From Oikopleura dioica (lineage: Eukaryota > Animalia > Chordata), in contig OU015567.1 of assembly GCA_907165135.1 (NCBI GenBank), positions 13,144,001-13,208,000 on the forward strand: a stretch of 64,000 nucleotides of DNA. Reading direction: 5' to 3'. The translations under genes were made by a program, and so were the position numbers. Of this stretch, positions 11,021 to 60,629 are shown in pieces. How positions within the stretch are numbered: the first letter of the stretch is position 1; each line of letters opens with the position of its first letter. The notes below the pieces were generated by a model. The model searched no databases and was not told the origin of the DNA. It worked only from the letters and a program-made list of their open reading frames with translations.

Positions 11021-13394
11021 TCAAATTGAACTCTGAAGATGCAGTTTGAGAAGAATTCCAAAGGAGGCGAAGAAAACTGTGGAAGTCAAAGCCAGCGCCC
11101 AAAAATGACTAAAATGTAACTCAAATTTCTATGTTCTTATCATGTTCAGAATATATAATTAACTCTACTTATTGAATTCTTTTATAAAAAACTTCATTAC
11201 ACTGGGTGCTCATTTTTTTATCATAATCTGAAATTGGGCGGCCCAATTTGGGCCACAAAATGGTCGTCATTCTTATACGTACCTGAACATCTTTCCATAG
11301 AAGCGCCAAGCAAGTGTTAAATCTTCTTCGGAGAACGAAATCGCATTTTCTAAAATTGAATTTATTACGCGGTGTAATTTACATTAATCATGCCAATTAC
11401 AAGTAAATATATTTTTAAAGAAGGTACCTTTTAAAGTCACCGTGTCTAGTGATGCACGTTTTTTATATTTTTCCTGCGGTTTTTCCTTTTCCGCTTTGTG
11501 GAGGATGACAGCCGGGATCACATAGCTCGCAAAATGAATTTTTTCGTAAAATTTTGCCGAGTAAAACGAAAACTTTGCTTTATAAATTGTAAAATTCTGC
11601 ACTTGATCGGGGGTCTTATCTTCGTTCCAAAGAACCATTACTGTGGTAAAAACGAGTTATATTAGGGCAAAAGAGAATAATACGTACCTGTTAGAATTTG
11701 AGCAAACACACTTGACAAGGTGCTCACAAGAAACAGAAGCAGTAATTCTGGGGAGGAGCTGGTCAGATTTTTGAAATCGAAGCATATAATAGAATTCCTA
11801 TTCTATTTGAGCGACATTCTGTCAAATATGTGTCAATCACTTTTAAAATTTCAAATAAGCCTAAGAGCGCCAAAAACTGGAATCGATTGTGTCAAAACGT
11901 CAAGATAGACAACAATTGTCAAGAGCATGGTCACCTTAATTATCATTGAGCCAACTTACCTTCAATCGTATTTTTAGGTATAAAATCTTATAACAATGAT
12001 TTTATTTTATTCCATACCTGAAACCCTATTGCCTCGCCACTGCTGACGGGTATCCAAAGCCCTAAAGTCCGTTAAATTGTGAACAATTATCCATCTTTAC
12101 CTAGGCACACTAGAATATTCATGCAAATAAGTGGGTAAAACAAGGTAATTTGATAATAGATAATATTTCGCTTCAGCGAAAACGTCGTCGAAAAGGTGGA
12201 AAAGACGCTTCCATCTGGTCCTTCTTTTTCAGAAATTTCAAACTAAAAGAGTATTTTTGAAAGAGATGGAGTGTGTTTACCTTGTAGGCTTTGAACTGCC
12301 ACTCTTCGTTTTCCTGGTAGAAGGCATTATACAAAACGTCTTCTTGAGTGTCATCATAATCCAATCCTGTCATGTTTGAGACGTCGCCCTGATATCCGTT
12401 TCGCTTGATCCATCGAGAAGCTGAGAATTTCAGCTCTTCGGTTTTAAATCCTGGTGTAGCGATGTCAATCGAGCATTCTTGCGAGTCGAATGGATACAAG
12501 CCCAATTGCATGTCGCACATAATAAGAGCTCGTACTTTTTCGTAGTAGAACACTTCGCCAATGTGGGAGACGTGAAATCGCGTCGATTCTTGACCCTTTT
12601 TCTGGTTCAATTTTTACGTCAGATCGTCAGTTTTTCGCAACTTAGCATATTACGCGGAAATTAAGCCATATTTTAGCGACTAGTAAAAGCAGAAACAGAG
12701 GCCTGAGATTTTCCCATAGTACAATGGTTGATCCTCGATTGGGAAGGGCACTTTATCTCGTCGCTTCCCAATCGAGGACTCGGCGCGCGCTTCCCAATCG
12801 AGGATCAACCATAGTACGTCCTGTAGTGATCCACTTGTCGACATTGGATATTTCAAGCTTTGGTTTCCAAAAACATTCGTTGCAGAGTGACATTTTCTGG
12901 ATCAGATCGTAATCTTCGGGAAACCATGCGAGTCTACTGTCGAACCAGGAAGAGTGAATTTCAAAAGTGACATCCATCAACGAGCCAGCGAGGTCGATTT
13001 CGTTAATGCTAATCAACTCGAGAAAAATGTCAACCTTGATGACGTTGTTGTCACGCCGAACGATCTCGTTGCCTTCACGCTTGTATCTTGGGTTGAGCGG
13101 AGAGATGCTCCTTTGGTAACCTTCTTCTAGCTGCACCAAAAGTTTCTCCTCCGTGAACTCTGCATCTTTATTCCCAAAAAGGAAGGTCCCATTTATCCTG
13201 CCTATCGGTATCACAACTTAGTGACACCTTACCCCATCATTTTTGAAGAAAACACTGAACCACGGTCGGGTCTATCATTTCTTTTTCAACTACTTGTATC
13301 TTACGGGTATCGTGGGACCTATACGCAGGATAATTGCGGCCTTCACGAAGTGAGAAGCGAAGAGAAATTTCAAGAGAAAAATCAAGACTTTCAT
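11021..13394 (-). CDS. Cys-loop pentameric ligand-gated ion channel subunit (5-HT3/nAChR-like, probably cation-selective)
   Basis: Signal peptide MKVLIFLLKFLF; W.D.RL.W; FWKPKLEISN; Cys-loop CDMQLGLYPFDSQEC; M1-M2 linker LWIPVSSGEAIGFQ; M2 VTMLLTIVVYLDVLTQSIP; M4 LVIFWALALTSTVFF before TGA at 11021-11023. Confidence 0.88.
12722..12814. mobile_element. 93-bp MITE (family A), TA TSD, Tc1/mariner-type ends
   Basis: TA|CAATGGTTGATCCTCGATTGGGAAG...CTTCCCAATCGAGGATCAACCATAG|TA with an internal extra CTTCCCAATCGAGGA; relative at 46930. Confidence 0.85.
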
Positions 13395-36204: not shown

Positions 36205-36844
36205 CAGTGTTTGAAAAAAGAATGTGCGCGGGCTGCGAGCGGGCGAGCGGGGCGCGGGCGGGCGCGCTCGTCCATCCGACCACCTAAAATTTTGACAAAT
36301 TTTGCCCCTGCCCATCCGCCCGTCAAAAAATCAGGGCTCATACTGCTCGCACGCGCACGTACCGCTCATGCTCCCCGCTCGCCCGCCCTCCCCTCCCATG
36401 CTCGCCCCTTGCCCGTGAGTGCATGTGATCGGACCGGGTATTATCGAGTAAAATGGACTCATTTTACACAGAACAAGGACTTATTTTACATAAGATTGGG
36501 ACTTATTTTACACAGAAAAATAGAAAATCGTTTATGATCTGTGTAAAATAAGTCCGTATTCTATGTAAAATAGGTCCCTTTTCTGTGTAGAATACGTCCG
36601 TTTTTTCCAACTCTGTTTTGGTCGGTTTTGGTTTATTTTTACGTTTCTTTCGGTTGGTTTTCTTTGAGTAGAATTTAGCGCCCCGGGAGGGTGAGCGGGC
36701 GGGCGCGGGAGGGTGCCCGCGCACATCCGCCCATCCGAAAATCTGGCCTTTACATGCCCGCTCCCATCCGCCCTTCCAAAAAATCGGACCCTTCGCGCCC
36801 GCGCTCGTCCGACCATTCGATTCTCAGGCTTTTTTCAAACACTG
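36205..36844. mobile_element. 640-bp non-autonomous hAT-type element
   Basis: 8-bp TSD GTTTAAAG (36197-204 and 36845-52); TIR CAGTGTTTGAAAAA; GC-box-rich subterminal regions; central inverted array of GGACTTATTTTACACAGA-like repeats. Confidence 0.9.
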
Positions 36845-38027: not shown

Positions 38028-40578
38028 ATTATTTTCAAACATCAACAAAAGCATGCTCAACGTCACGACGATAACTGAAACGACCACGACGACGACTACA
38101 ACGACGACGACTACTACCACCACGACAACAGAAGCTCCTCCAGAAGGGCCAACGATTGGAATTATTGGCGGCATTGGACTTTCAGGCCTGGGCTCGGCAA
38201 CCATGGAAAAGTTGAGTTAGGTTCTGAAAAGCTTCGATATAAAGCCGCGTAGCGGCTACTTTTCAGACGAAGCCGCAAAATGACCGCAGTATTACCATTT
38301 CAATCTATGTCTTCGCTTTGCGGCTTCGTTTTAAAAGCCGCTACGCGGCTTTCGATTTAGGCGTTTCAAAACCTGACTCAGGTTTCTCCACAGGTTGCCA
38401 AACCCATTTTCAGGCTGGTTTTGAGTTCTTTTTGTTTGAATTCTAGGATCGTAAGTCGGATTTTCTACGTGTCCAAGTTCACCCGAAAAGGTTCAAATTT
38501 ATTATTATAATTACAGCGGCTTAATTAATCGGGCTAGTTCCAAGTTCACGATTAGAAAGAAGAAAAAGCATGATGCTTCGCTTTATTATGAATCACGGTA
38601 ACGTGTTCCGCAGAGTGTAATTTGAAATTTCAAAAACCATCTGCAAGAGACATCAAAAATCACTCCATACGACAGGTGGGAGAACTTCACGACTACTGCT
38701 CACTTCTTCGCTGAAGAATATGCTCAGCTACCAGAGGAGAGGTATCATCATTGTAAAGGGGATCAAAATTGAACTCAATATAACTTTTTGTCAAGAAAAA
38801 AAATGCAAAATAATTTTTTTTCCTCGAATTCTTCTGCAATATTCAAGTTTCCTGTCGTAATGCCAGACAGAAAAATTGATTTTTCTTGACGCCTTTTTTT
38901 AATTATTGAGTTCAATATTCTTGATCTCCCGATGAAGTTCCGTAACGCTGTCTGGGTCCGTCTACGTCATGGGAGGCATTATTGGCAGGGCGACGAATCG
39001 ATACCAAAGGAAACCCGGGTTGAGAAAGCAAATTGACGGAGTAGTTTCACGCGTCAAATCTGACCGTTCCCATGCTGATTATCCGGGTAGACGCTTTTAT
39101 ATCCGTTTGCGAATTGCAGTGAATTTTTGATAAATTCTGCAATTTTTCCGTAAATAATGTTCTAGGGCCATTTTCCTTGTGTAGTTGTTTTTCTTGTGTT
39201 TTCGCAACCTGTCGCCAAGTGTACAAGGAAGCACCCAAGTGCGGACAAATTCCGTTCTGCGCCTAATTCCGAAGAAAAAGCTCTGGGTAGATGCGCACGA
39301 TATGATCAAGGAGAGGTACCGTAGCTCGAATATCCCAATCTCTTCAAAAATACGTAGATCGAATCACGTGTGCACCGCCTGGAATGGGTACATTTGGGCT
39401 TGTGGGCCGGAAACAAGCTGCGAAGTGATGAAGCCAGGGCATATTGGCTCCGCGCCCTGGCAACAAGCGCCGCCCATGTGGAGAATGCGTTCAAGATCAG
39501 GAACTTGTTTAGAAAGAATCTCTCCTTTATTGAAGAAAAGTTCTTCGAAGAAAAATGAATCCAAACTGTCCGTTCTGTTTGATAAACAAGTAACGAGCAA
39601 TGGTTGCTACGCCGAGCCGCGGAATAGTCGTCATCGGCGGATCTGGCACGCGTTCTGTTGAGCAAATTCCATCCCACGAACTATTTTGGGCGGAAGGGTA
39701 AATAATAAATTGCTTTTAAAGTTAAAAGTTCGAAATTAGAAGCTTAAATAATCCACTTTTTTACGCGCTCTCTCGAGTTTTTGCTTTGTTGGCAAAAAAG
39801 AAGTGAGGGTACGTTTTTAGACAGTAAAATTTGAGAAAAGTCAACATGTTCTTTTCAGACCAAGTTTGCCGTATGTTCTGGAAGATATGGCTGCCGTGGC
39901 GATTGGCGAGTCGATCTACCTTCTCGGCGGATGGATGTCGATTGGAGCCACGGATAATATTCTTATGCTATCGTAAGTCAATCTTCTTAGAATTTTTTAG
40001 AACCTATGGTCTTTCTCGGTCGCAAGGCGGTTCCGCTAGAATATAAAATTGATTGAAATTGTAACTATGGCGAAGCCGCTTTGCGGCTTCGTTATTAAAA
40101 AAAGCCGCTAGGCGGTTTTTCATTATAGCCTCTTCAGGAGCCTGACTCAGGTTTTCTACACAGGTTACCGAGCTCTGCTCTCGGCTAATTCAGTTTTTAG
40201 GGAGGGAGGAATTCGCTGGATGAAGATCGCAAAGCTCCAACGTGCCAGACATTGGTATGCAATTTTGTTGTTGAAGGATTATTTCTGATTTGCGGATCCG
40301 CAAGGGTTAAAAAAAGATGGAGATGATATTTTGCTAGGTTTGCATCGGTGCGCTATGGCAACGACCTGTGGTGCATTGGCGGCGAGTTGGACGGAACATC
40401 AGAAGTGTTCCATTCAGCTGACAATACTACTGAATTGCTACAGGAAGGGCGCGCGGATCTTGCAACGCGGACAGAAATGCAATTCCGCCTGCAATTCCGA
40501 TACACGGATTTTTCAGATTTTTTCCGGTCTTGGCTTTTTTTCGAAATTGAAGAATATTTTTTCTGTTTTTGCCTCTGA
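38028..40578 (+). CDS. Kelch-repeat beta-propeller protein with N-terminal poly-Thr stalk
   Basis: Repeated GG motifs (GSVYVMGG, GIVVIGG, ESIYLLGG, NDLWCIGG); poly-Thr run at about 38065-38130; both ends approximate. Confidence 0.7.
38214..38400. repeat. Palindrome-rich intronic repeat, copy 1
   Basis: AAGCCGCGTAGCGGCT / GCTTTGCGGCTTCG motifs then CCTGACTCAGGTTTCTCCACAGGTT; homologous to 40070-40170. Confidence 0.65.
40070..40170. repeat. Palindrome-rich intronic repeat, copy 2
   Basis: GCCGCTTTGCGGCTTCGTT...AAAAGCCGCTAGGCGG...CCTGACTCAGGTTTTCTACACAGGTT aligns with about 38315-38400. Confidence 0.65.
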
Positions 40579-45869: not shown

Positions 45870-48800
45870 TTAGCACTCGAGCGATTTGTTCCAGGCACAG
45901 ACGGCAGTTTTTGGATTGCAGTTGCACTTCAGCTGCTTCTGCAATTTCGACGAGTCACTTGCACATGTGACACTCTTGCATTTACCAGCCTAAATGAATT
46001 GATGCTTTTTCAACTCTCTTTTTGAGTAAATATCTTACCCTCGGAGCGTAGAAAATCTTTCCAGCGAGGCTCATACTCCTCGAAGACTCGACACGGTCGA
46101 TCACCTTCTTGCTAACTGGCTTGATGCAGCTTGAATCGTCCCAGCCGATTGGCATCTCGCAGCCTATTGTTAAAATGATAAGAAATCAAAATGAAAGAAG
46201 ATAGAAAGGGGAAGGATTTGATACCAATAGGACAAATCGGGGGCGATTTGCTCCAGTCGCAACTGCCATTTTTGCAAACGCAAGTTGTCTTCGATGCATT
46301 TGGCTTCCATAAAAATCCGTAGAATGCCTGGTTTTGGTTCTTAAATTACCGCAAAAAAGATGCTTTCCAGAAAAGCTCGTACTTGAAAAAATTGAATCTG
46401 AACCATTCCTTGTCGCAGAAAATTCTTCCACACTGAGTCCCTTCTGGATAAAATCCGTTCTTGATGACGGCCTTCTTCTTATTTGCGCCCTTGCATAGAC
46501 CGTATTTATACTGTGCTTCAATTTTGCAACCAGCAGCTTGTGCTTCTTCCACCGCTGCTTTGGGGCAATCTGAAATAAAATAATTTTAGACGATTGAACT
46601 TAAGAAGACCCTTGTCTATGAATAATCCCGAGATTAGGATCGAGCTTACCTTGATTAGAACACTGCTGGCTTTGTTGAGCAGTTCCTTGACAAGTTTCGC
46701 CATCCGGGCAGGATCGTGTACGCGTTTGTTGTCCCTCTCCGCAGCTAGCGCTGAATAAAGCGTTTTAGAAACTTGGTTAGTTTCGTTTTCGAGGATTAAT
46801 AGAATCAAAGAATCGGAGCTCTTGTTCAGTTCTTGCCGTAAGTACTCGGGAAAAGTAAAATAAACAGATATTTGAGGATGTTACCAGAGCATGTTTAATT
46901 TACTTATTTATGTCTCCTTTCGAAGACTACAGTGGTGAATCCTCGATTGGGAAGGACGCGCTGAATCCTCGATTGGGAAGCGGCAGCGCATATAGCAAGC
47001 CAATCTCTAGAGAAGTGCGGTGCGGACCGAATCCTCGATTGGGAAGCGGCAAGTCAAAGTGACCTTCCCAATCGAGGATTCACCACTGTACTTTAATCAG
47101 GTCGCGGAAAATCGACAAAAATTAGCATATTAGCTTGAACTTTTCTCTATTCTAAAAACTCGCGCGTGCCTACTTTCCATTTCAAAGCTCCGTAAAAGCG
47201 AAAAAAACGCGCTGTTACCTGCACTGAGTCCAAGCTGTCCAGTCCGCCCAGCCAAGTGCGACCGGGCATTCTTCTTCACCGCAGCTTCTCGATTCGGCTG
47301 TAATGAACTTACGACACTGAGGCTTTCTTCCAGAGCAGGATCGGCTCCGTTCTTGGGTTCCTCCTCCACAACTGACGCTGCAAGAACTCCACGAAGTCCA
47401 AGAACCGAGCATGCTTGCCGCTGCCGTTGGTTTTTTCACATTATTGGCTGAAATAAAAAAGTAAGTTAAGAACAATCAAGATTCTTTTTTTTAACTTACC
47501 ACAAGCTTTCTCTGTGCACGTTTCCATTTCAGCGGCATCTGCAGCTGGGCATTCCGAACTTCCGATACTTGCGTAAAGGCAGCCTCTGGATCGTGCTCGG
47601 TGGCCTTGACCGCAGGTGCTCGAGCATGGGGACCAGATTCCCCAGCCACTCCAGCTAGGGCAAGGAAGACCTCCGCAGAATTGGAAATCTTGCTCGTCCT
47701 TCTTTGGGCAACTAGAACTTCCTACCTGTGCGCCCTCGCATTCCCGTGTTCGACGCTAAGAAAAGTTGATTATCTAAGCTATTCTGTTGAGCGCGCGTTT
47801 ATTATCATAGAACTTTGATTCCTGCGTAAAAATCAAAAGTGTTCAAGTATTCCAAGTAGGCCTACCTGTTGTCCGTGGCCGCAAGTTTTGCTACATCCTT
47901 CCCAAGCGCCCCAATTCGCCCAGCCAGGGCAAGTGTGCGTGTTACACTGTTCAGTTTCAATATTATCAAAACGGGAGCACGAGCCTTGCCCGATAAAACC
48001 TCCATCGCAGAGTCTATTTCTCCTGCGCATTCCGGCGCCACAAGAGCGTGAACAACCGCTCCAGGCTCCCCACCCGCCCCAGGCGATGCTAGATACTTCC
48101 TTTGCGCCAGGGGCGGAAACGGCCTCTGGCTCGAATCCGAGGCAGTTGCAGGATTCGGACTCGACGTTCTGTCCTTCGGGGCAGCCTACCGCGTAACCAG
48201 CCTGGCCTCCTTTGCAAAATCTGAGTCGCTTTCTTGAACAGTTGCCGCGGCGGTCAGCTTGACAGGAATCCCATTCAGACCATTCACCAAATCTGAAAAA
48301 TTAAATTACCGAAAGATTAACTCCCAGACTCCGCCGACGTGTTATTTCAGCACGCAGCGAATTAGGGGATAAACTCAATTATCTCTTCTCTTTATTCCCT
48401 TATGCTAAAAACTATTGACCGAGAATCTATGGAACTATTGTCTGTCTGGGAGTCAATGTTGTGGCCAAAATTGTTGTTTTAGAATAACAGGTAGTTCCGC
48501 TTTTTCTCGCTCAAAATTGCAATTTTCACCCCAGAAACCACAATTCTCCTTATTTTCTCACCTCGGTGCATTAGCACAGCTTGCCCAGGCCCACTTCCAA
48601 GCACCAGACATTGAACTTCTTATGTGCATATCTTGCGGGCAGAGTTGCTGCTCGAAACTGTAGCCGTTGACCTGGAGCGTGTTGATTTGATCGCTTATAA
48701 GCCAGAAGTTATCCGTTGCTGTCGAGTAGTAGTACAGGAAATACTCGCGTCCGGGCCCTTCAAGTTCGTAGATTGGTCGATCATTTAGAGATCGTCCTTC

Positions 48801-50795: not shown

Positions 50796-51494
50796 TCAAC
50801 AAGCTGGAATATTGAATACTTTTCTTTTTGAAAAAAATAAATTCACTTTCTTTTTACTTTATCATAAAAATTCTTCGCGGAACAGACTTTGATAACGATC
50901 ACGAAATAATATTATAATAATGATATTCTCTCGAATGGGACTTGAAGTGATCTAAGCTGGATTTGAACTAACCTTGTTGACGTAAGTGTGTCCAACGCCG
51001 CTTCGGCATTGCCACTTGCCGCCCATGCACTCGTAGCCCATTCCACCGCAGTTGTAGATTTCGCAGATTTGGAGAGCATCGTTTTGGGAAAATCGGTTTC
51101 GCTGGACGACGACGGGCTTTCCGGATTCTCGGTGAACAACTGTTGGTTCTCCATTCACCGAAAAAGCGTAACCACCTTATAAAAAATCGTTAATATTAGT
51201 CTTCCGATTTCGTGGATGTCCTTGTTACGGAAGTTTATGTATCAAAAATTCATCGCTTAGAGATAATCTGGGATAAAATACGCGGCTTCCGTCCTTTCGA
51301 AATAATGAAAAAACGTGCGTGCGTTCGCCCTTCCTGAAATTCAAAAGCATGTCAGAAAAGCGTACATAAACTCGCCACGGAAAGTTAAAGGGCCAACCTC
51401 TCTAAGTGAAATTGTTTTTTTTTTTCGAGCAACGTCCTCAAAAAAAGTCTCATTCTTCCACTGCTTACCGTAATGCATGACAGATTGGAAATCG

Positions 51495-51647
51495 GAGAGA
51501 GGCGATTTTCTGGCAGTTAGATTTTCTGGCAGTTAGACTTTCTGGCAAAGGCGATTTTCTGGCACTGCCAGAAAATCTAACTTCCAGAAAATCGCCTTTG
51601 CCAGAAAATCTAACTGCCAGAAAGTCTAACTGCCAGAAAATCGCCTT
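51495..51647. repeat. Left TIR: self-palindromic array of 16-17 bp units (ATTTTCTGGC-AGTTAG/AAAGGCG)
   Basis: 4 forward units then 5 inverted units, forming a long hairpin. Confidence 0.92.
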
Positions 51648-52260
51648 TTTAGTATGCATATTATTTGAAACTCTGCAAAAAACTCTTTTTAATAAAATCA
51701 TTTATAAATTCGAAAAACTGGTGATTATCACACAAATTTCATTCCGGAGCAGTTTCAGCAGGAGTTTGCACCTTTCGACGGGAGCGTTTGATCTAAAAGC
51801 CGACTATTCAGGGCGCTAAAAAAGACGACGAATTTGGAATTGAAATTTCTGCGCTAAAAATAGAATGAGGGCAGCATCCACAGTTCGTTCTTGCTATTTT
51901 CGGAGTAACAAACGGGTTAACAGGCAGCTGAAAAGTTAGATTTTGATTTTTCTGAGAAAATGGAGGATGATGAAGAGAATGCGGATAGAAAAATGTTGAA
52001 ACTGACACCGATTCCACCACCTTCTGAGGAAGAATTTTCAGGATAGTTTTATAACAAGTTCAGTTTCAAAAAGCATTTGCGTGCGCCATTATCTCAGTGG
52101 GTGCTCACTGTGACCAAGTACTCGAAATCAGATGCAAACACCGGGTGATTAACACAGAAATTCCCGGAAGAAGCTGATTTATGTTTGCTACAGCTATTAA
52201 TCTTGAATAAATGGGTCAAAAGTGGCCTTTGTCAATGAATTTTTATAAAACGTGTAAGAA

Positions 52261-55200
52261 AACATTGGTGGTACTGTCGAAAACCCTGCCTTGGTAACGA
52301 TTCAACGAAACTCAAAAAACAATGCATCCTTCCTCGTCAAAGTTGCTTCCAGATCATTTGCTTTCAAAGCAAGAAAAGCGAAGAAAACGATTCTGCATTC
52401 TAAAAACGACGATCCTGACTTCCGTTTCAAGATGCGAGTCGAGTGTGAAAATCAATCATATTCGAAAGACGCTTCATTCCGCTGTTCAACGAAGATTTGG
52501 ATGTTTGCAAAAGTTGTTGATATGGAATCTCCTCGTTTTTTTGAGCTCAGCAATTGGCGATGTGGAAAGCTAGAGTCGAAAGTAGACATTCACATGAATA
52601 AATGTCTGAAGAACGATGCACTCGAAAAGAAGCGATTACAGTACGCAACGACTGTGTCCATGCTCAACAGGAACCAAATTCGCCCAAAAAGTCAACAGAC
52701 AATTCGTGGAGAAGTTCAAAAAGATTCACAACTTTCGAGCATGGAAAGAGGCAATCTTTTCACGAAAAAGGAGATGAGACGTCTTGCTCAGAATTCCAGA
52801 AAGTACGAAAGAAAAATAAAGGCCGCTACAGTTCCTGATCCTCGACGCTTGGAAGACTGGATGACAGTACTAGGAAAGTGATTTATTTGACCGAGCACAG
52901 ATGCACGAAAGAAATGACAGTGAATATAGTTTAGTTAAATCTTGAGTTGAATTATCCTTTAGAGCTTGGGACATCCTTGATACGGTAGAAAAGCAGAGGC
53001 CGTGCGTTCTTCTTTTTCCTTTGTCTTTCCCTGAACTAACATAAATTCGAAGCCGCAAGCGGCTTCTCTTACGATGCAGGAGTTCTTGGGGCTTCGAGGA
53101 CCCGAGCAGCGGGAGCTCCAGCTCGAGCGGGTGCTTTCTTTGCTGTTGTAGAAACTGCAGCGAATTTGAAGCGGGAGTCACACCAGCGTTCGCTCTCGCA
53201 TGAACGGGACCAAGAGGTTCTCCCTTTGAAATCAGAATTGAAAAAGGATTTCGCGTTCTTTTTGATTTACCTGATAGTTAGCGTCGAAAAACTTTTTAAA
53301 CCATTGAACGAAGTGTGAGACACTTGACAGTGGTGAAAGGAAATTACTTTGCATGACGTTGTCGCCACGGAAGCAGATTTCTCCTTTTCCTTCGCGCGCA
53401 TAATAATCCATGTCGGGCACGTCAACAAGTTTAAAAAATATTAGCCATCGGCAAATAGCTGAACCAGACGTCGCTTGTTTTCCAAGGCTCTTTAACCGAG
53501 AAGATTGTAATGCCACAGCAGACGGTGCAGATGTTCTTGTGAGTCAAGACGACGCCTTTCGGATCGCCAGTCGTGTCGGATGTGTAATTGATCGTAGCAA
53601 TGTCTGAATAATGAAATTAAATGATCGCCCCTATTTTTATCATTTTTACCTGAAGAAGTCGGCGGAACATTATCAAACGAGCTGTCTTTTCCGATTGCAA
53701 TAAAATCGTCGAAACTTATGATTTTATAATTGGAGGACTTGACCTTCTTGAATTTTCGAAACACAACGATTGTTTGAAGATGAGCAGGCTTGATTTTGAG
53801 AATGAGGTCAAGTTTCTTTTGATTTTGAACGAAGCAGATTGGAGCTTCAATCTGAAGAAAAAGTAAAAATAATCTCGTAAAGAAGTTGTAAACTTACGTG
53901 CTCGAGAATGTATTTGACTGCTTGTTCACCAAAAGTATCGTAAAGCGAAACATTGCATATATTTTGATAGTATCCTCCAATGATTACTGCGTCGTATTCG
54001 TAGCAATTCGACGAGTAGATCGCAATTTTGCTTTCTCCACTGATAAGTCCGTGCTTTTTCAGTGAATTCGCCAGGTATTGAGATGTTGCAGCGAACTCGC
54101 CATAAGTACGGGTCGTGTAATCTGTCAAATCTGGCGTCGGAGTGCCTCAAATGATAGCATTATCACTGGCGGTCTCTCTTCCTCGCTGGAAGCACTCAAG
54201 AATTGTCTGAATAACTGTAAAGAAAGTTCTGAGTGATACGCTTTACCTGTGGATAATCAGCTGGCAGAGTCCAGAGTCCTTTCTTCTCGCAGAGAATATT
54301 GTGTCTTGCGAAGGTTTCAGAATCTGCTTCATAACTTTGTGGCGCGTCAACGTAGTCTAATTTCTTGTTTCTGTGTAGAGTTATAATTTTGATGAAGACA
54401 AACCTTATCTACGCCCATTTTTTGAACGAGTTTTGCAAGACTTTGAAGTTATTGACATATTCGTGCTCGTGTTTTGCATTGTACTTTACTGTCTTTAGTC
54501 GGATGGAACCTAAACCAAATGTAGCTTGATTAAAAACGATTCGAAAGATGAGGGGTAAGGTGGAGACAACGAGGACATCATTTTTGTTTCACGAAACGAA
54601 CATTGAAAAGTAATAATTCATTAATAAATCACGAAAAGGCGATGGTGAAACAAAATGGATTCTAATGAATGAGTTTCTTTCGCCGGAACAACGAAGCCCG
54701 ATATGGGATGAAGCTCTAGCTTTTGCGACTCAACACGATTTGCGCATGCTGACCTCTTCAAAACACTGGTTTGTTGACGGTAAATTCTTTACGAAAGGCC
54801 AGCAAAAGAAGTTTGGCTACCGTCAACTCCTCATTATTGGATCAAGAGACCGAGATGATAGTGTTAATCCTAGATTCTTTATTATTCTCAAGGGTCAGTC
54901 TAAAGAAGGCTACAAGATTGTCTTTGAGGCTTTAAAGGAAATGATCAATATTGAAAATTTTGAACTTACTTGGTTCGGCAGCGAATTTGTCGTGTGTAAT
55001 AACGTTGATGAGGACCACAATCGGCCGTTCGGTAGTTTTGAATAGCAGAGCAGCCGATTTTCCTGAAAAACTGTAAATTGATCTACAAAAAGAAACTTTG
55101 TCCTGATTCTGAATTTACAACTGTCTCGTCCGATTTCGAACCTGGGCTCAGAAATTCGATTCGCGAAACATGGCCGGAGAAGAATCTACGCATGGTTGGG

Positions 55201-56017
55201 TGCTACTTTCATTGGTTACAGAGTGTTAGAAGATATTTACAAAGTCATGGACTGTTGGCACTCTGGGAGAAAAATGGAAAGATACTCCAAGCACTCATCC
55301 ATGCGATCCCATTCATTCACTTGACCGAACCTACATTCTACGACACATTTATGCAGCTTTTGCGTCGAACACTTGATGAACTGTCTACACCACTAATCAA
55401 AGACGAGATTAATGAGTTCTACAGATATCTTTCTACGACGTACTTGAATGACGATGCTAAATTCCCTCCTAGTTCATGGGCCCTTGCATTATCGATAGGA
55501 GCGAGGAATGGTTCAAAATTCTTGACTAATAACAGTCTTGAAATCATGGTAAGTTACCTTTTTCGATGGGAAATCTTGTAAAAACATCGAATTCGTGAAG
55601 ATGCGATTCCAACTAAAATTAAATGTTTAGAACTCATCCCTGGTGGATCAAGGAATCAACAATGCGACAGAGCTATCTACGGTCATCTCCATTGCTAATG
55701 GCTTTAAAAGTGAAAGCTTCAGTACGGAAATTGCTAAGCTTGAGAGCAACAGCCAGCAAAGTACTAAAAATGACAGATTGTGCGCCTTAGTTGCGGTTGT
55801 ACGCTACGAGCAGCTAGCAAGATTTGACAAAAAATGCGCAGAAAATGGCTCAATCGAAGAAGCAATTGTTTCTGTCGGCTTCGGCTTGATGAGGGCCAGA
55901 TCAAAGGCCGAGTCATTGAAATCTACTCAGAAACTCCGACATTTTATCAACAACGCCACGCAACCAGAAACTGCTGTATTTCAAAATTTGATTAAAGAAT
56001 CAACAGCTGACGTATAG
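52261..56017 (+). CDS. MULE transposase, multi-exon (possible further upstream exons from ATG 51960)
   Basis: N-terminal Cys/His region (ECENQ...RCSTK...HMNKC) at 52291-52873; catalytic core WFVDGKF...QL...Y..VF..L...SDFE...GCYFH...TNNSLE at 54639-55550; a GA-AG intron 52874-54638 joins the halves in frame (WMTVLG|DGETKWIL). Confidence 0.85.
53348..54370 (-). pseudogene. ACSL: Captured, decayed long-chain acyl-CoA synthetase fragment
   Basis: [38 protein letters not shown] (P-loop G to D), SYLPMA joined directly to [21 protein letters not shown]; in-frame TGA (NAII*GTP); retains its introns. Confidence 0.85.
54404..54509 (-). pseudogene. MAPRE: Captured single exon of EB1/MAPRE (CH domain)
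   Basis: Bounded by TTTAG| and |GTTTG; reads [36 protein letters not shown], closely matching the EB1 CH segment; neighbouring EB1 CH exons are absent. Confidence 0.88.
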
Positions 56018-56073
56018 TTACTATTTTTTATACAAAAATAAAAATTATTTAGTCATACCAGTTTCAAGAAGCA

Positions 56074-57322
56074 ATGCCTGTGATGTCCCCAGTTCGCGAT
56101 GAGCAAGAAACAGCTGGTGAGCAAGTTGACCCAGATCCTTTCGCTCAGCAAGGAGGAGAATTCGATTTGAGAAGAGTTGCGGCGCCAATCGCTCAGCCAG
56201 TTCAAAGAGTGGAAAGAAGAGTCGATGAGGAGACGAGCAATGATGAAGTCGATGTGCCAGCTGTTATCCATGAGTTCGACCCACCTCCAGTGGACTCTTT
56301 ACCGTCGGACAATGAGGATCGTGAGCCTGAAAACTGTAATATATCAAAAATGTAAATATCAAAAATTTAATATTTCTAGTTGAAAAATCGCCATCTCCAA
56401 TACATTGGGAACGACTTCTGGATAAAACCGATGAGATAGATGAAACGATCAGAAAACAGTTTCCAAATCGTCCTTCGTCTTCAGAATCGGAGCAAGGTAA
56501 CTGTCCATATTTAAAAAATAAATGACTTTCATTTAAGAAAATGACGAAGCCGGACAAGCTAATCGTTCTCGTCCAACATCTGATTCTTACCGGAATTTTG
56601 ATGACAGAACTAGTCCCGAAAAGCTGGTTCTATCTGAACCCAAGCAGCCACGGAAGTATATTCGCAGCGCAAAATCCGCAAAACAGCGCAAAACGCGGGA
56701 TCTTTCATTGTCAGATTCTGAATCGGATCGTAAGTTTAGTTTTATCAAGCAGAATGTTAATTATTCTAGATGAGCGCCCCGAATCTTCGCAAAATACGCG
56801 TAGTTTGTGCGCAAAAGTGAAGCGGAATGCGAAAAAATCAACCTATTGCGAGCATGATTCCCCACCAAAAAAGAAAAAGAAGAAAACTGAAGCCGAAGTG
56901 CGTTTGGCAGCCCAAATTGCGAAAGAAAAGAAAATTCTTAAAGAAAGAAATCGAAAAAAAAGAGAAAATGATCCTAAGGTAATGCTTGTATGTTTCTTTA
57001 AGAAAATAGCAGAATATTTAGGGCTACTATGCTGATATAGCAAATAAACGGCGTCAAACCATTCAAAGAAAAAAAGAACAAAATGAAGAGTTGATCGCAG
57101 AGTTACGGGAAGAGCTGGAAAAAATGAAGGCGGAAAATGCGAAATTGCGAAAACGCGAAGAAATGAGAAAAGCAGATATCCCAGGATTGTTTACACGTAT
57201 ATAATGGTTTCTTATTTAATTGTATTTAATTAGAATAACTTGATAAATAATAAAAAGACGATGACGATTTGATGCGCCAATTAAAAGAAGTACTCGCCAC
57301 TTCCGACGAAGAAGACTTCTGA
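56074..57322 (+). CDS. Second element-borne gene: acidic N-terminus, basic region and coiled coil (bZIP-like)
   Basis: Exons with GT-AG boundaries: MPVMSPVRDEQ...; PPKKKKKKT...KERNRKKRENDPK|; ...KRRQTIQRKKEQNEELIAELREELEKMKAENAKLRKREE; ends ATSDEEDF* at 57320-22. Confidence 0.6.
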
Positions 57323-58485
57323 TGTTCTATAAAAAAAGCTCCTTACATTTTCATCAAACTCGTTACATTCGTTACGGACGATTTCCATAGGTCAGAGCCG
57401 TTACAAAATTACCGGGGCAAACTTGCTGTTGCTCTAGCGCCTAAGGGTTACATTGTAGCCCAAGACATCTTTATACGTATCGACGGAGAATCTCAAGCTC
57501 TATGCCAGTATCATCTCAGATTTTCGAGATCTCAAAAAATTTCGGATTTATGGCGATTTTTCATTTTTCAAAGGACTACGTGTCCCTAATTCAGCCAATC
57601 ACAGCACTGTATTTGACGCATTTGCACCGGTAAATTTGTAACGTCTCAGTTAATTGAAGCCGCTGAAAAATAAACCAATAAGTGAAAAAATTGATTGCAA
57701 AAGAAAATTCGAAACTCCTTTCCTATATATTTTTCTTCTTCGTTGGAGCTCCTAAAGATGGAATCGAGCACGTCGTTTTGTTGATTCATCGAGTTCCTAG
57801 AATTCGGAAGCTTTCTTTGTTGTCTGCGAGAAGAATACTGGCAGGAAGTTCTTCAATATCTTTCGAGGAGTTCAAAATCATGTTAAATTAAAGAAAGGGC
57901 ACAATTATAACGGGTAAATTCTTCTGGAGGCCCACAATTATAACGGGTTCAATATTCTCCCCGTTGTTATTTTATATGGTCAATTTTCAACACTGAGTCC
58001 TTTCTGAAATTGAAATTCTGAATTAAAATTTAAAAATGATAGACAGTATTTTAGTTTCGCAACTCGTAAAGCTTTAATGTCAAAAATTGAAAAAAAATAG
58101 AAACATTTAACTTATCAACGGTTTGTGCATCGAAAGAGAGAAGAAAACGCATCATACATTAAATACGAAAGGTTGAAGTTTGGAGGCGAAACAAAGCGGA
58201 AACACAGTTCATAAGTTTTAAGCGAATTGGGCAAAATTTTATAGGCAGTTAATTCTTCTCTAATTCCTCTGGCAGTTAATTCTTCTCTGATCTTCATCAT
58301 TTCCGCTTGAAAAAAACCGTTGATTTATCAACTAAATTCAGGCGAGCACAGCGCGGCGAATAAGGGAGGAGCGCGCCGCCCACGCGCGCCTGACTATTTC
58401 TCAGAAGAATCAGAAGATGAATTCCGAGCTCTTCTTCTCTCCGTTTTTATCTTCCAGGATCATTAACTATAGATGTGAAATCAAA

Positions 58486-58606
58486 GAGGCGATTTTCTGG
58501 CAGTTAGACTTTCTGGCATATTAGATTTTCTGGCATTGCCAGAAAATCGCCTTTGCCAGAAAGTCTAACTGCCAGAAAATCTAACTGCCAGAAAATCGCC
58601 TCCCTC
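58486..58606. repeat. Right TIR: self-palindromic array of the same units
   Basis: 3 forward plus 4 inverted units; its reverse complement matches the left TIR over about 86 bp. Confidence 0.92.
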
Positions 58607-60629
58607 TGGAAATCGTAGTCGCCACCTTCGGAAGATGATTCCCACTCATGGAGGGGCAGCTGATCGAATTGCGCGTTGCAACTCTCTTGTCCAGTTGAGC
58701 CGCACATGTTTCCGATGTTTTGGTACTAGAGAACAGCATTTTTAAACAATCGAAAATCAAGATGAATCTGACAAAATTAAGTTAAGATCAACTAGTTTTC
58801 TGCGAAAAATACAGTAGATGTTTCATAATGTGAAAAAACTCTTATTGAAAAGTGACGCTTATCACACATTTTCATCGAAATAAATCTCCGTTTTAAGCTT
58901 GTTACCTTGACTTCGATGTATTTTTGGCGTCCGGTCGAGCCTGTTCGTGATAAAATCCAAGCGCATGCATAAATTCGTGCTGAACGGTTCCTCTCGAGAC
59001 GCAACCCAGCGATCTAATGGAGATCTCCTGTTCGCTCACGCCCTGAAAGCCGACGTAGGAATAGCAGCCCGATCCACTCGTGATTTTGATCTTGCTGTCG
59101 TAACTTCTGTCCTTTGCGTTGACGAGTCGGAAGTCAATGCAGGTATTCGATCCAAGATCAAAGAGAGCTCGCTTGATGTCCTCTCGCAACTCGGCTGGGT
59201 AATTGTCTTGGAAGTAGAACGGAATCACGTGCCTGAAAAACAAAAGGTTAATTCAGGGAGAAAAAGGAAGATGAGCGGTGAATCCAATCTGGGCAAAATG
59301 GAATTCCCCGTCTTCAAAAAAATGTGACGGATGGGCTGACTGGCTAAACCAAAGCCACTGAGCTCATTTGCCACCTGCCCTGTTACTCGGGACGGAGAAA
59401 TCGCGCAGTAGCTACTGTACAAGAAACACGTGTATTTGAAACTTACTTGTTGTGTTCTCTGTATTGATCCCACTTGACAACAGCTCCAATAGCTCTGGTG
59501 AGCTCTCTTCTTCGTTCCATCGCGTCCGTTGTTTCGTTTCTGTTCATTCCATTCCTCGCCAAATACTGCCGGTAAAGAGGGTTGATGTCGAGAGTTGGGT
59601 CAATTCTATGTCCAATCGTCGATTGTCCCTTGTCGCGCATCTTCTGCGCCTGCCACTCGCCAAAAATCATATCGTCTTCGCGTCCACCGCGTTCCAATTC
59701 GCTTCCTGCAAATCGGGTATCAACAAGTTTACACAAGTTCCACGACAGTTCCCTCATTTAGAAAGCGATTAATGGCGGACAGTTACACGCGATCGCTTCC
59801 GTTTACGAGAAATTATAATGCAAGTGAATTTAACATAGATTATATTCCGATGGAATCGCTCATCAGACAATTTTCAAGAGCAATTTTTAGTTGAAAATCA
59901 AAGAAATAAGGCCAAAGAATCAAAGAGATTTTAGATATTTCGACTACTAAGAGGCTTATAAGATCATTTTTAGAAGGACTTGAAAGTAAGTGTTCTATGC
60001 GAAGGAACGCGTGGAAATCGGATCGATGCTCGGTGTCACCCAGAAGATGTGACAGTAAATACGATTATGGTTTCTCTAGGCAGCGCGCTCCCAACCCGTT
60101 GCGTCTAATTCTGTTGACGCTTTTCCAAAGATCAGCCCCTCCTCAGCTTTGCCGAGCCCACTGCCGACTTTTTAATTTATAAACTTAGCTTGGATTCCTC
60201 CTCTGATTTTCGAGAAAGCCGAGGTCTTACAAGACGAAAAACCGTAACAGTGGAGAGGCGTGAAATTTAGAAGAAACTTGTCGGAAGTGAATTTCCCACG
60301 GTGAATGATCGAATTTATTAAAACAAGAAAAATAAAGTCAATTGGTGTGGTGGAAGCTCCCGGAAGTTATTACGTACGGCGATAAACTACCGACCAGCAA
60401 TGTCGTGTAGGAATAATCTTGTTTCACCTTTAATTTTCAGAATGATGCATTTTTAACTTATTTTAGATTCTATCAATGAAGAAGAAAGATTGGGAGAAGA
60501 CACGAATCGACAAAAAGGCGAAAAACTTTTAAACCAATCAAATATTCGTATTCGGCCCGCGAGCCAATGAGATTACAGAAAAAAAAGGCACAAAATTTGA
60601 GTTGATTGTAACATTTTTGCCGATTCAAG

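Follow-up and report, generated by a model that had tools for sequence, protein, structure and literature searches.

Antisense host gene fragments within a probable GA-AG intron of the transposase gene of a Mutator-like element in Oikopleura dioica

The window analysed here, a stretch of 64,000 nucleotides of Oikopleura dioica DNA (contig OU015567.1, positions 13,144,001 to 13,208,000), contains a Mutator-like transposase gene whose N-terminal and catalytic parts are separated by 1765 nt in which fragments of the host genes for EB1 and ACSL lie in antisense orientation. An earlier note, made from the letters alone, proposed that this DNA is an intron that lets the element carry host DNA and stay autonomous. 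The locus thus raises the question of whether the cargo has broken the transposase gene or resides in an intron that is removed from the RNA together with its contents. The analysis argues for the latter, and it is probable that an old GA-AG intron of the transposase gene has taken up cargo that is spliced out with it, so that the element remains mobile.

The element and its transposase gene

The element and its ends are composed as follows:

51495-58606: Mutator-like element of 7112 nt (~7.1 kb), containing the cargo intron
51486..51494, no strand: left target-site duplication, 9 bp, TGGAAATCG, identical to 58607-58615
58607..58615, no strand: right target-site duplication, 9 bp, a perfect match to the left copy
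51495..51650, no strand: left end, 86-nt terminal inverted repeat (51495-51580) within a foldback of short repeats
58483..58606, no strand: right end, foldback with the terminal inverted repeat 58521-58606

Mutator-like elements (MULEs) are characterized by target-site duplications of 8-11 bp, and the two identical copies found here measure 9 bp. The long terminal inverted repeats of this class are represented by 86 nt with 98% complementarity and G as first base, which is shorter than the hundreds of bases typical of MULEs. The element is inserted into an astacin coding exon on the minus strand, the empty site of which encodes YDFQSVMHYG in the Met-turn region; as it interrupts this exon, the insertion is recent. 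Other short foldback or MITE-like repeats are found in the window at 12710-12817, 46918-47092, 36450-36604, and 38208-38385. From the end of the transposase frame up to the right end (57330-58480), ~1.1 kb of sequence contains short open frames on both strands, which had no family match; this sequence is possibly further cargo. In the DNA run X5, which is derived from another population, read depth at 51947-52340 and 57266-57650 is 15-30 times that of exon 2, which suggests many short non-autonomous derivatives in that population.

The transposase is predicted on the plus strand as 11 stop-free exons with consistent phase that encode 953 residues, as checked exon by exon:

51960..52041, plus strand: exon 1, with a homologous exon in the related lineage L003
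52042..52258, plus strand: intron 1, GA-AG, phase 1, with a 9-bp terminal stem
52259..52873, plus strand: exon 2, encoding the N-terminal part, in which C, C, H, C are conserved
52874..54638, plus strand: intron 2 (cargo intron), GA-AG, phase 1, 1765 nt; same site in L011, L002/L020, L003, and tentatively L012
54639..54937, plus strand: exon 3, with the first catalytic D at 54776
54938..55092, plus strand: intron 3, GA-AG, phase 0, with a terminal stem and a 41-nt piece matching host RNA (54974-55014)
55093..55548, plus strand: exon 4, with the second D at 55132, CxxH at 55201, and E at 55540
55631..57322, plus strand: predicted exons 5-11 up to the stop, with five 40-44-nt GT-AG introns and one GA-AG intron, from sequence only

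The residues of a DDE transposase with the CxxH motif of MULEs are present (D 54776, D 55132, GCYFH at 55201, E 55540), and a FLYWCH+MULE protein can be aligned with exons 3 and 4. Exons of relatives match PF10551 at E-values of 5e-6 to 2e-3, slightly below the curated cut-off; the split exons of the window alone did not reach the PF10551 threshold, and a JGI scan returned three weak generic MULE matches and no more. P0011 as a longer exon 3 protein was rejected as a gene-calling artefact in which TGA is read as Trp. Within exon 2, the C, C, H, C residues are invariant; a comparison with N-terminal zinc fingers of the FLYWCH or WRKY/GCM1 type gave no significant match, no family was found by Pfam, profile comparison, or Atlas, and a U3_assoc_6 match stayed below the cut-off. 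The exon 2 product may have a DNA-binding role. In the predicted model, the acidic/coiled-coil region at 56053-57322 is joined in frame to the transposase via a 41-nt GT-AG intron (56012-56052). The dN/dS ratios in comparison with L011 (0.15 for exon 2, 0.18 for exon 3, and 0.13 for exon 4, at dS of about 1-2) indicate that the exons flanking intron 2 are under purifying selection, although these values are means over the whole split between the window and L011 and say nothing about selection after the arrival of the cargo. The GA introns of the element are 73-1765 nt and its GT introns 40-82 nt long, and all cargo found is located in GA introns.

The probable cargo intron, its contents and its relatives

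The borders, length, and phase claimed for intron 2 agree with the sequence (CTAG/GAAAGT at 52873/52874, GAAAAG/GCGAT at 54638/54639, 1765 nt, phase 1), and the proposed join of 52873 to 54639 is in frame, yielding the junction peptide L-G-D-G-E-T-K-W. Left unspliced, the frame of exon 2 reaches a stop two codons past the donor, and the frame of exon 3 is closed by two stops immediately upstream of the acceptor. Sequence features of Oikopleura GA-AG introns are found, namely an AG/GA donor, an AG acceptor, and restoration of the frame by excision; AGGA occurs at ~0.4-0.7% of positions. Two canonical GT donors (52867 and 52878) were considered unsuitable because their only in-phase acceptors (54673 and 54696) remove invariant residues. 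The word CACGAAA, which is present near 52905 and again near 54630, was considered as a scar of insertion, an idea given up since its 3' copy belongs to the stem and acceptor conserved in L011. A paucity of cryptic sense splice words in the antisense cargo was unsupported by a simple word count, as the sense strand of intron 2 contains 7 donor-like and 5 acceptor-like words, not fewer than the antisense strand. Judged by the comparison with relatives, intron 2 is very probably spliced out of the RNA.

The cargo consists of the following pieces:

52910..53036, minus strand: captured piece matching the end of a host RNA (X7 record 9, 4 differences in 127 nt)
53072..53312, minus strand: EB1 3' pieces (end of the CH domain and linker), host intron retained at ~53223-53269
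53313..54370, minus strand: genomic fragment of ACSL (acyl-CoA synthetase) nested in the EB1 fragment, with host introns kept, an internal deletion, and in-frame stops
54402..54511, minus strand: EB1 5' piece (CH domain, human residues 54-85), with a frameshift near 54418

Both gene assignments of the earlier note were confirmed, EB1 by matches to PDB EB1/EB3 chains (E 2e-8 and 3e-4) and ACSL by the Pfam AMP-binding family (E 7e-12 and 9e-16), and all of these pieces are indeed antisense and inside 52874-54638. In human numbering, EB1 residues 54-85 lie at 54402-54511 and residues 106-120 at 53270-53312, with the ACSL piece between them. Host RNA connects the two EB1 parts across the inserted ACSL fragment and leaves out three antisense GT-AG introns, with CT..AC joints at three places, so that capture was from DNA and took at least two steps. 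Divergence between the cargo and the host RNA of run X7 is only ~1-10%. The cargo is decayed, non-protein-coding genomic DNA with stops, a frameshift, and an internal deletion. No gene identity was found for the window pieces 52910-53036, 54512-54600, and 54974-55014 and for several cargo pieces of L001 and L003. In runs X9 and X12, a host RNA was found to match the 41-nt piece in intron 3 (54974-55014); the antisense peptide of this piece presumably resembles UNC-45, for which a PDB search gave no confirmation.

The same intron was found in four other lineages represented by marine metagenome contigs:

L001/L011: intron 2 of 1042 nt, 75% protein identity, antisense VPS28 cargo (E 7e-14)
L002/L020: intron 2 of 322 nt, ~40% identity in exon 3
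L003: intron 2 of 91 nt without cargo, 39% identity
L012: intron 2 of 100 nt, tentative, as the contig begins three bases before the donor

An AG/GA donor, phase 1, and an A-rich AG acceptor occur at the same codon position in four lineages and tentatively in a fifth. In the window and L011, all 10 bases following the donor are identical, as are 17 of the 20 that precede the acceptor, whereas the interiors are not alignable. Continuity of the gene in cargo-free relatives had been named by the earlier note as evidence against an intron; the cargo-free L003 has a 91-nt GA-AG intron in the same codon phase instead, and two other lineages carry other cargo in the same intron. Since the intron is shared by relatives with other or no cargo, it is far older than the present cargo and does not represent a break that the cargo caused. 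Among the lineages compared, no relative without intron 2 was found. Intron 1 is absent from L020 and intron 3 from L019, and each reads through the respective junction with the predicted residues. A sister contig of L002 has a weak antisense Sortilin_C match at the place of intron 2, and intron 3 of L003 is a GA-AG intron of 1122 nt with LIS1-like pieces. Altogether, cargo occupies these introns in four lineages, in each of which the exons on either side are open, and every lineage with enough sequence has some cargo. The contigs L012 (4-103) and L019 (1-45) are copies of one lineage that have the intron 2 acceptor in common and differ further upstream, so that the interior of the intron varies within that lineage, too. 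A further contig, L004 (338-2740), is a deletion derivative of the L003 family that runs from the left end through the LIS1-like cargo of intron 3 to the right end.

The identified cargo genes are antisense in five of five cases (EB1, ACSL, VPS28, LIS1-like, and sortilin-like), which is only suggestive of a real antisense bias because mainly antisense frames were scanned.

The ends of intron 2 can pair with each other through two arms:

52878..52887, plus strand: 5' arm of the stem, GTGATTTATT
54623..54632, plus strand: 3' arm of the stem, AATAAATCAC

The arms form a perfect 10-bp stem in which +5 to +14 are paired with -7 to -16. Intron 2 of L011 keeps 10 bp by a compensatory change from T-A to A-T, while swapped ends pair over 8 only. 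Terminal stems better than in shuffled sequences were found in 10 of 11 GA introns of the family (p 0.001-0.033, with p 0.051 for the eleventh) and, by the same shuffle test, in none of nine GT introns; L020 adds two more stem-bearing GA introns. Folding of whole introns retains the stems with a pair probability near 1, and the expected number of end pairs is 11.6 as compared to 0-6 in 12 control stretches, with long folds being rough. No description of terminal stems of GA-AG introns was found in the accessible literature. The pairing of the ends may render GA introns tolerant of inserts. The earlier note had credited a tolerance of GA donors with helping the element to carry cargo; the property that helps is probably the terminal stem of these introns more than the tolerance of GA as such.

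Proposed mechanism and alternative explanations

According to the preferred explanation, intron 2 would be an old GA-AG intron in the gene for a Mutator-like transposase, and its paired ends beside both splice sites would let the spliceosome define the intron whatever its interior. At least two rounds of copying would have brought host genomic DNA into the intron, with EB1 arriving before ACSL, which was then placed into EB1, most likely by template switching during break repair in the element, as the Pack-MULE literature suggests. Insertions into exons would kill the element, whereas insertions into these introns would leave with the intron; as the cargo would be removed in this way, the transposase would stay whole and the element could move with its cargo.

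Contigs of the DNA run X5 cross the border between exon 2 and the intron as well as that between cargo and exon 3 (records 2 and 8), so that the arrangement is no assembly artefact; a partial list for the X5 copy contains numerous amino-acid changes, and its exons 4-5 are uncovered. In the RNA runs X7, X9, and X12, no reads or contigs were found on the catalytic exons, no read spans the junction 52873^54639, there is no RNA on the flanking exons, and RNA on the cargo is host EB1/ACSL only. X7 is a shallow plankton sample, and X9 and X12 stem from a lineage that is less than 90% alike, which weakens their blank. We infer that the loaded intron is spliced, that the transposase is expressed, and that the element mobilizes itself.

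The missing transposase RNA is also in line with a real and old intron whose present cargo spoils splicing, in which case this copy would be a non-autonomous Pack-MULE of young age, mobilized by a sister element with less cargo. An AATAAA and words resembling canonical splice sites within intron 2, as well as the deletion derivatives of the family, such as L004, are consistent with this explanation, which is nevertheless unlikely: none of the 11 exons has lost its open frame, although stops and a frameshift have gathered in the cargo, open exons flank the cargo-bearing introns of four lineages, and the stem has been kept. It is extremely improbable that there is no intron at all and that the cargo broke a continuous transposase gene with GA-AG borders arising by chance. 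The lack of a junction read and the non-canonical nature of a GA donor with a purine-rich acceptor would fit such a break, but it is contradicted by the cargo-free L003, in which a 91-nt spacer with stops and a stem occupies the same phase, and by borders that are conserved around a replaced interior.

The short inverted ends and the GAAA flanking the stem on both sides are reminiscent of a small mobile element, either an introner or a MITE with cargo, that entered the transposase and whose terminal repeat would be the stem. This is very improbable for the 1765-nt piece, as the same site is occupied in lineages that are only ~40% alike and differ in stem sequence and contents, and as the donor-stem word occurs just once in the window; the empty intron may have originated from an ancient introner. 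Finally, the cargo could be kept because it is useful, if the excised intron, being antisense to host genes, gave rise to small RNAs or blunted silencing. This is quite unlikely, yet compatible with the preferred explanation. The uniform antisense orientation and the presence of cargo in every sufficiently covered lineage speak for it, but the cargo differs between lineages and is decaying, the antisense count is biased by the way in which frames were scanned, and an antisense bias could result from the purging of sense inserts.

Relation to known gene-capturing elements

Gene capture by Mutator elements is known mostly from plants and from elements devoid of a transposase. Plant Pack-MULEs were reportedly described by Jiang et al. 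in 2004. By definition, Pack-MULEs lack a transposase and are moved in trans (PMC6446971, PMC6431247). The present element resembles plant Pack-MULEs in its MULE ends, its 9-bp target duplication, and its chimeric, decayed host fragments of genomic origin (PMC6446971, PMC6431247): EB1, ACSL, and two further pieces lie between the ends, host introns are kept, and ACSL is located within EB1. It is unlike them in that its cargo lies within the introns of an open transposase model; with 953 stop-free residues, catalytic residues, and signs of purifying selection, there is no indication of transposase loss and movement in trans. The element is therefore a transposase-bearing variant of a Pack-MULE in an animal. 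As a multicopy DNA transposon with terminal repeats and host gene sequence it is similar to animal Pack-TIRs including Ssk-FB4 of Drosophila (Tan et al. 2021, PMC8277862). Like MuDR with mudrB, KI-MULE with Ulp1, VANDAL, and the Chenopodium CACTA element (PMC8978399), it bears a transposase and has acquired host sequence. In these elements, the additions are a separate open reading frame, an added domain, or sequence upstream of the coding region, and the gene pieces of the Chenopodium CACTA element lie outside the coding region (PMC8978399). In contrast, the acquired sequence of the present element is non-coding and situated in transposase introns, repeatedly at homologous sites. Reports of cargo in transposase introns or of capture by MULEs in Oikopleura were not found in the accessible literature.

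In O. dioica, GA donors with an upstream AG are supported by RNA (PMC7072748), 11-12% of introns are non-canonical, and the median intron length is 49 nt (PMC8008620). The element follows this pattern with its AG/GA(A) donor (PMC7072748) and with GT introns in the size range of that genome, whereas intron 2 is far from the median with its 1765 nt (PMC8008620).

Intron lengths of 91, 322, 1042, and 1765 nt at the same site, together with compensating stems, form a natural series in which the splicing of the many non-GT introns of Oikopleura can be tested, and L004 illustrates a route from a loaded autonomous element to a classical Pack-MULE. Capture seems to be recurrent in homologous introns of transposase-bearing animal elements, which shows how the conflict between bearing cargo and remaining mobile can be circumvented. 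It is conceivable, albeit still tentative, that stem-closed GA-AG introns of transposase genes serve as standing cargo bays throughout this clade in these tunicates, in which over 1 kb of host DNA in antisense orientation would be taken up, swapped, and spread with autonomy kept and antisense RNA released on expression. Such elements could acquire host DNA without breaking themselves, while their distant relatives fill the same spacers with other scraps.
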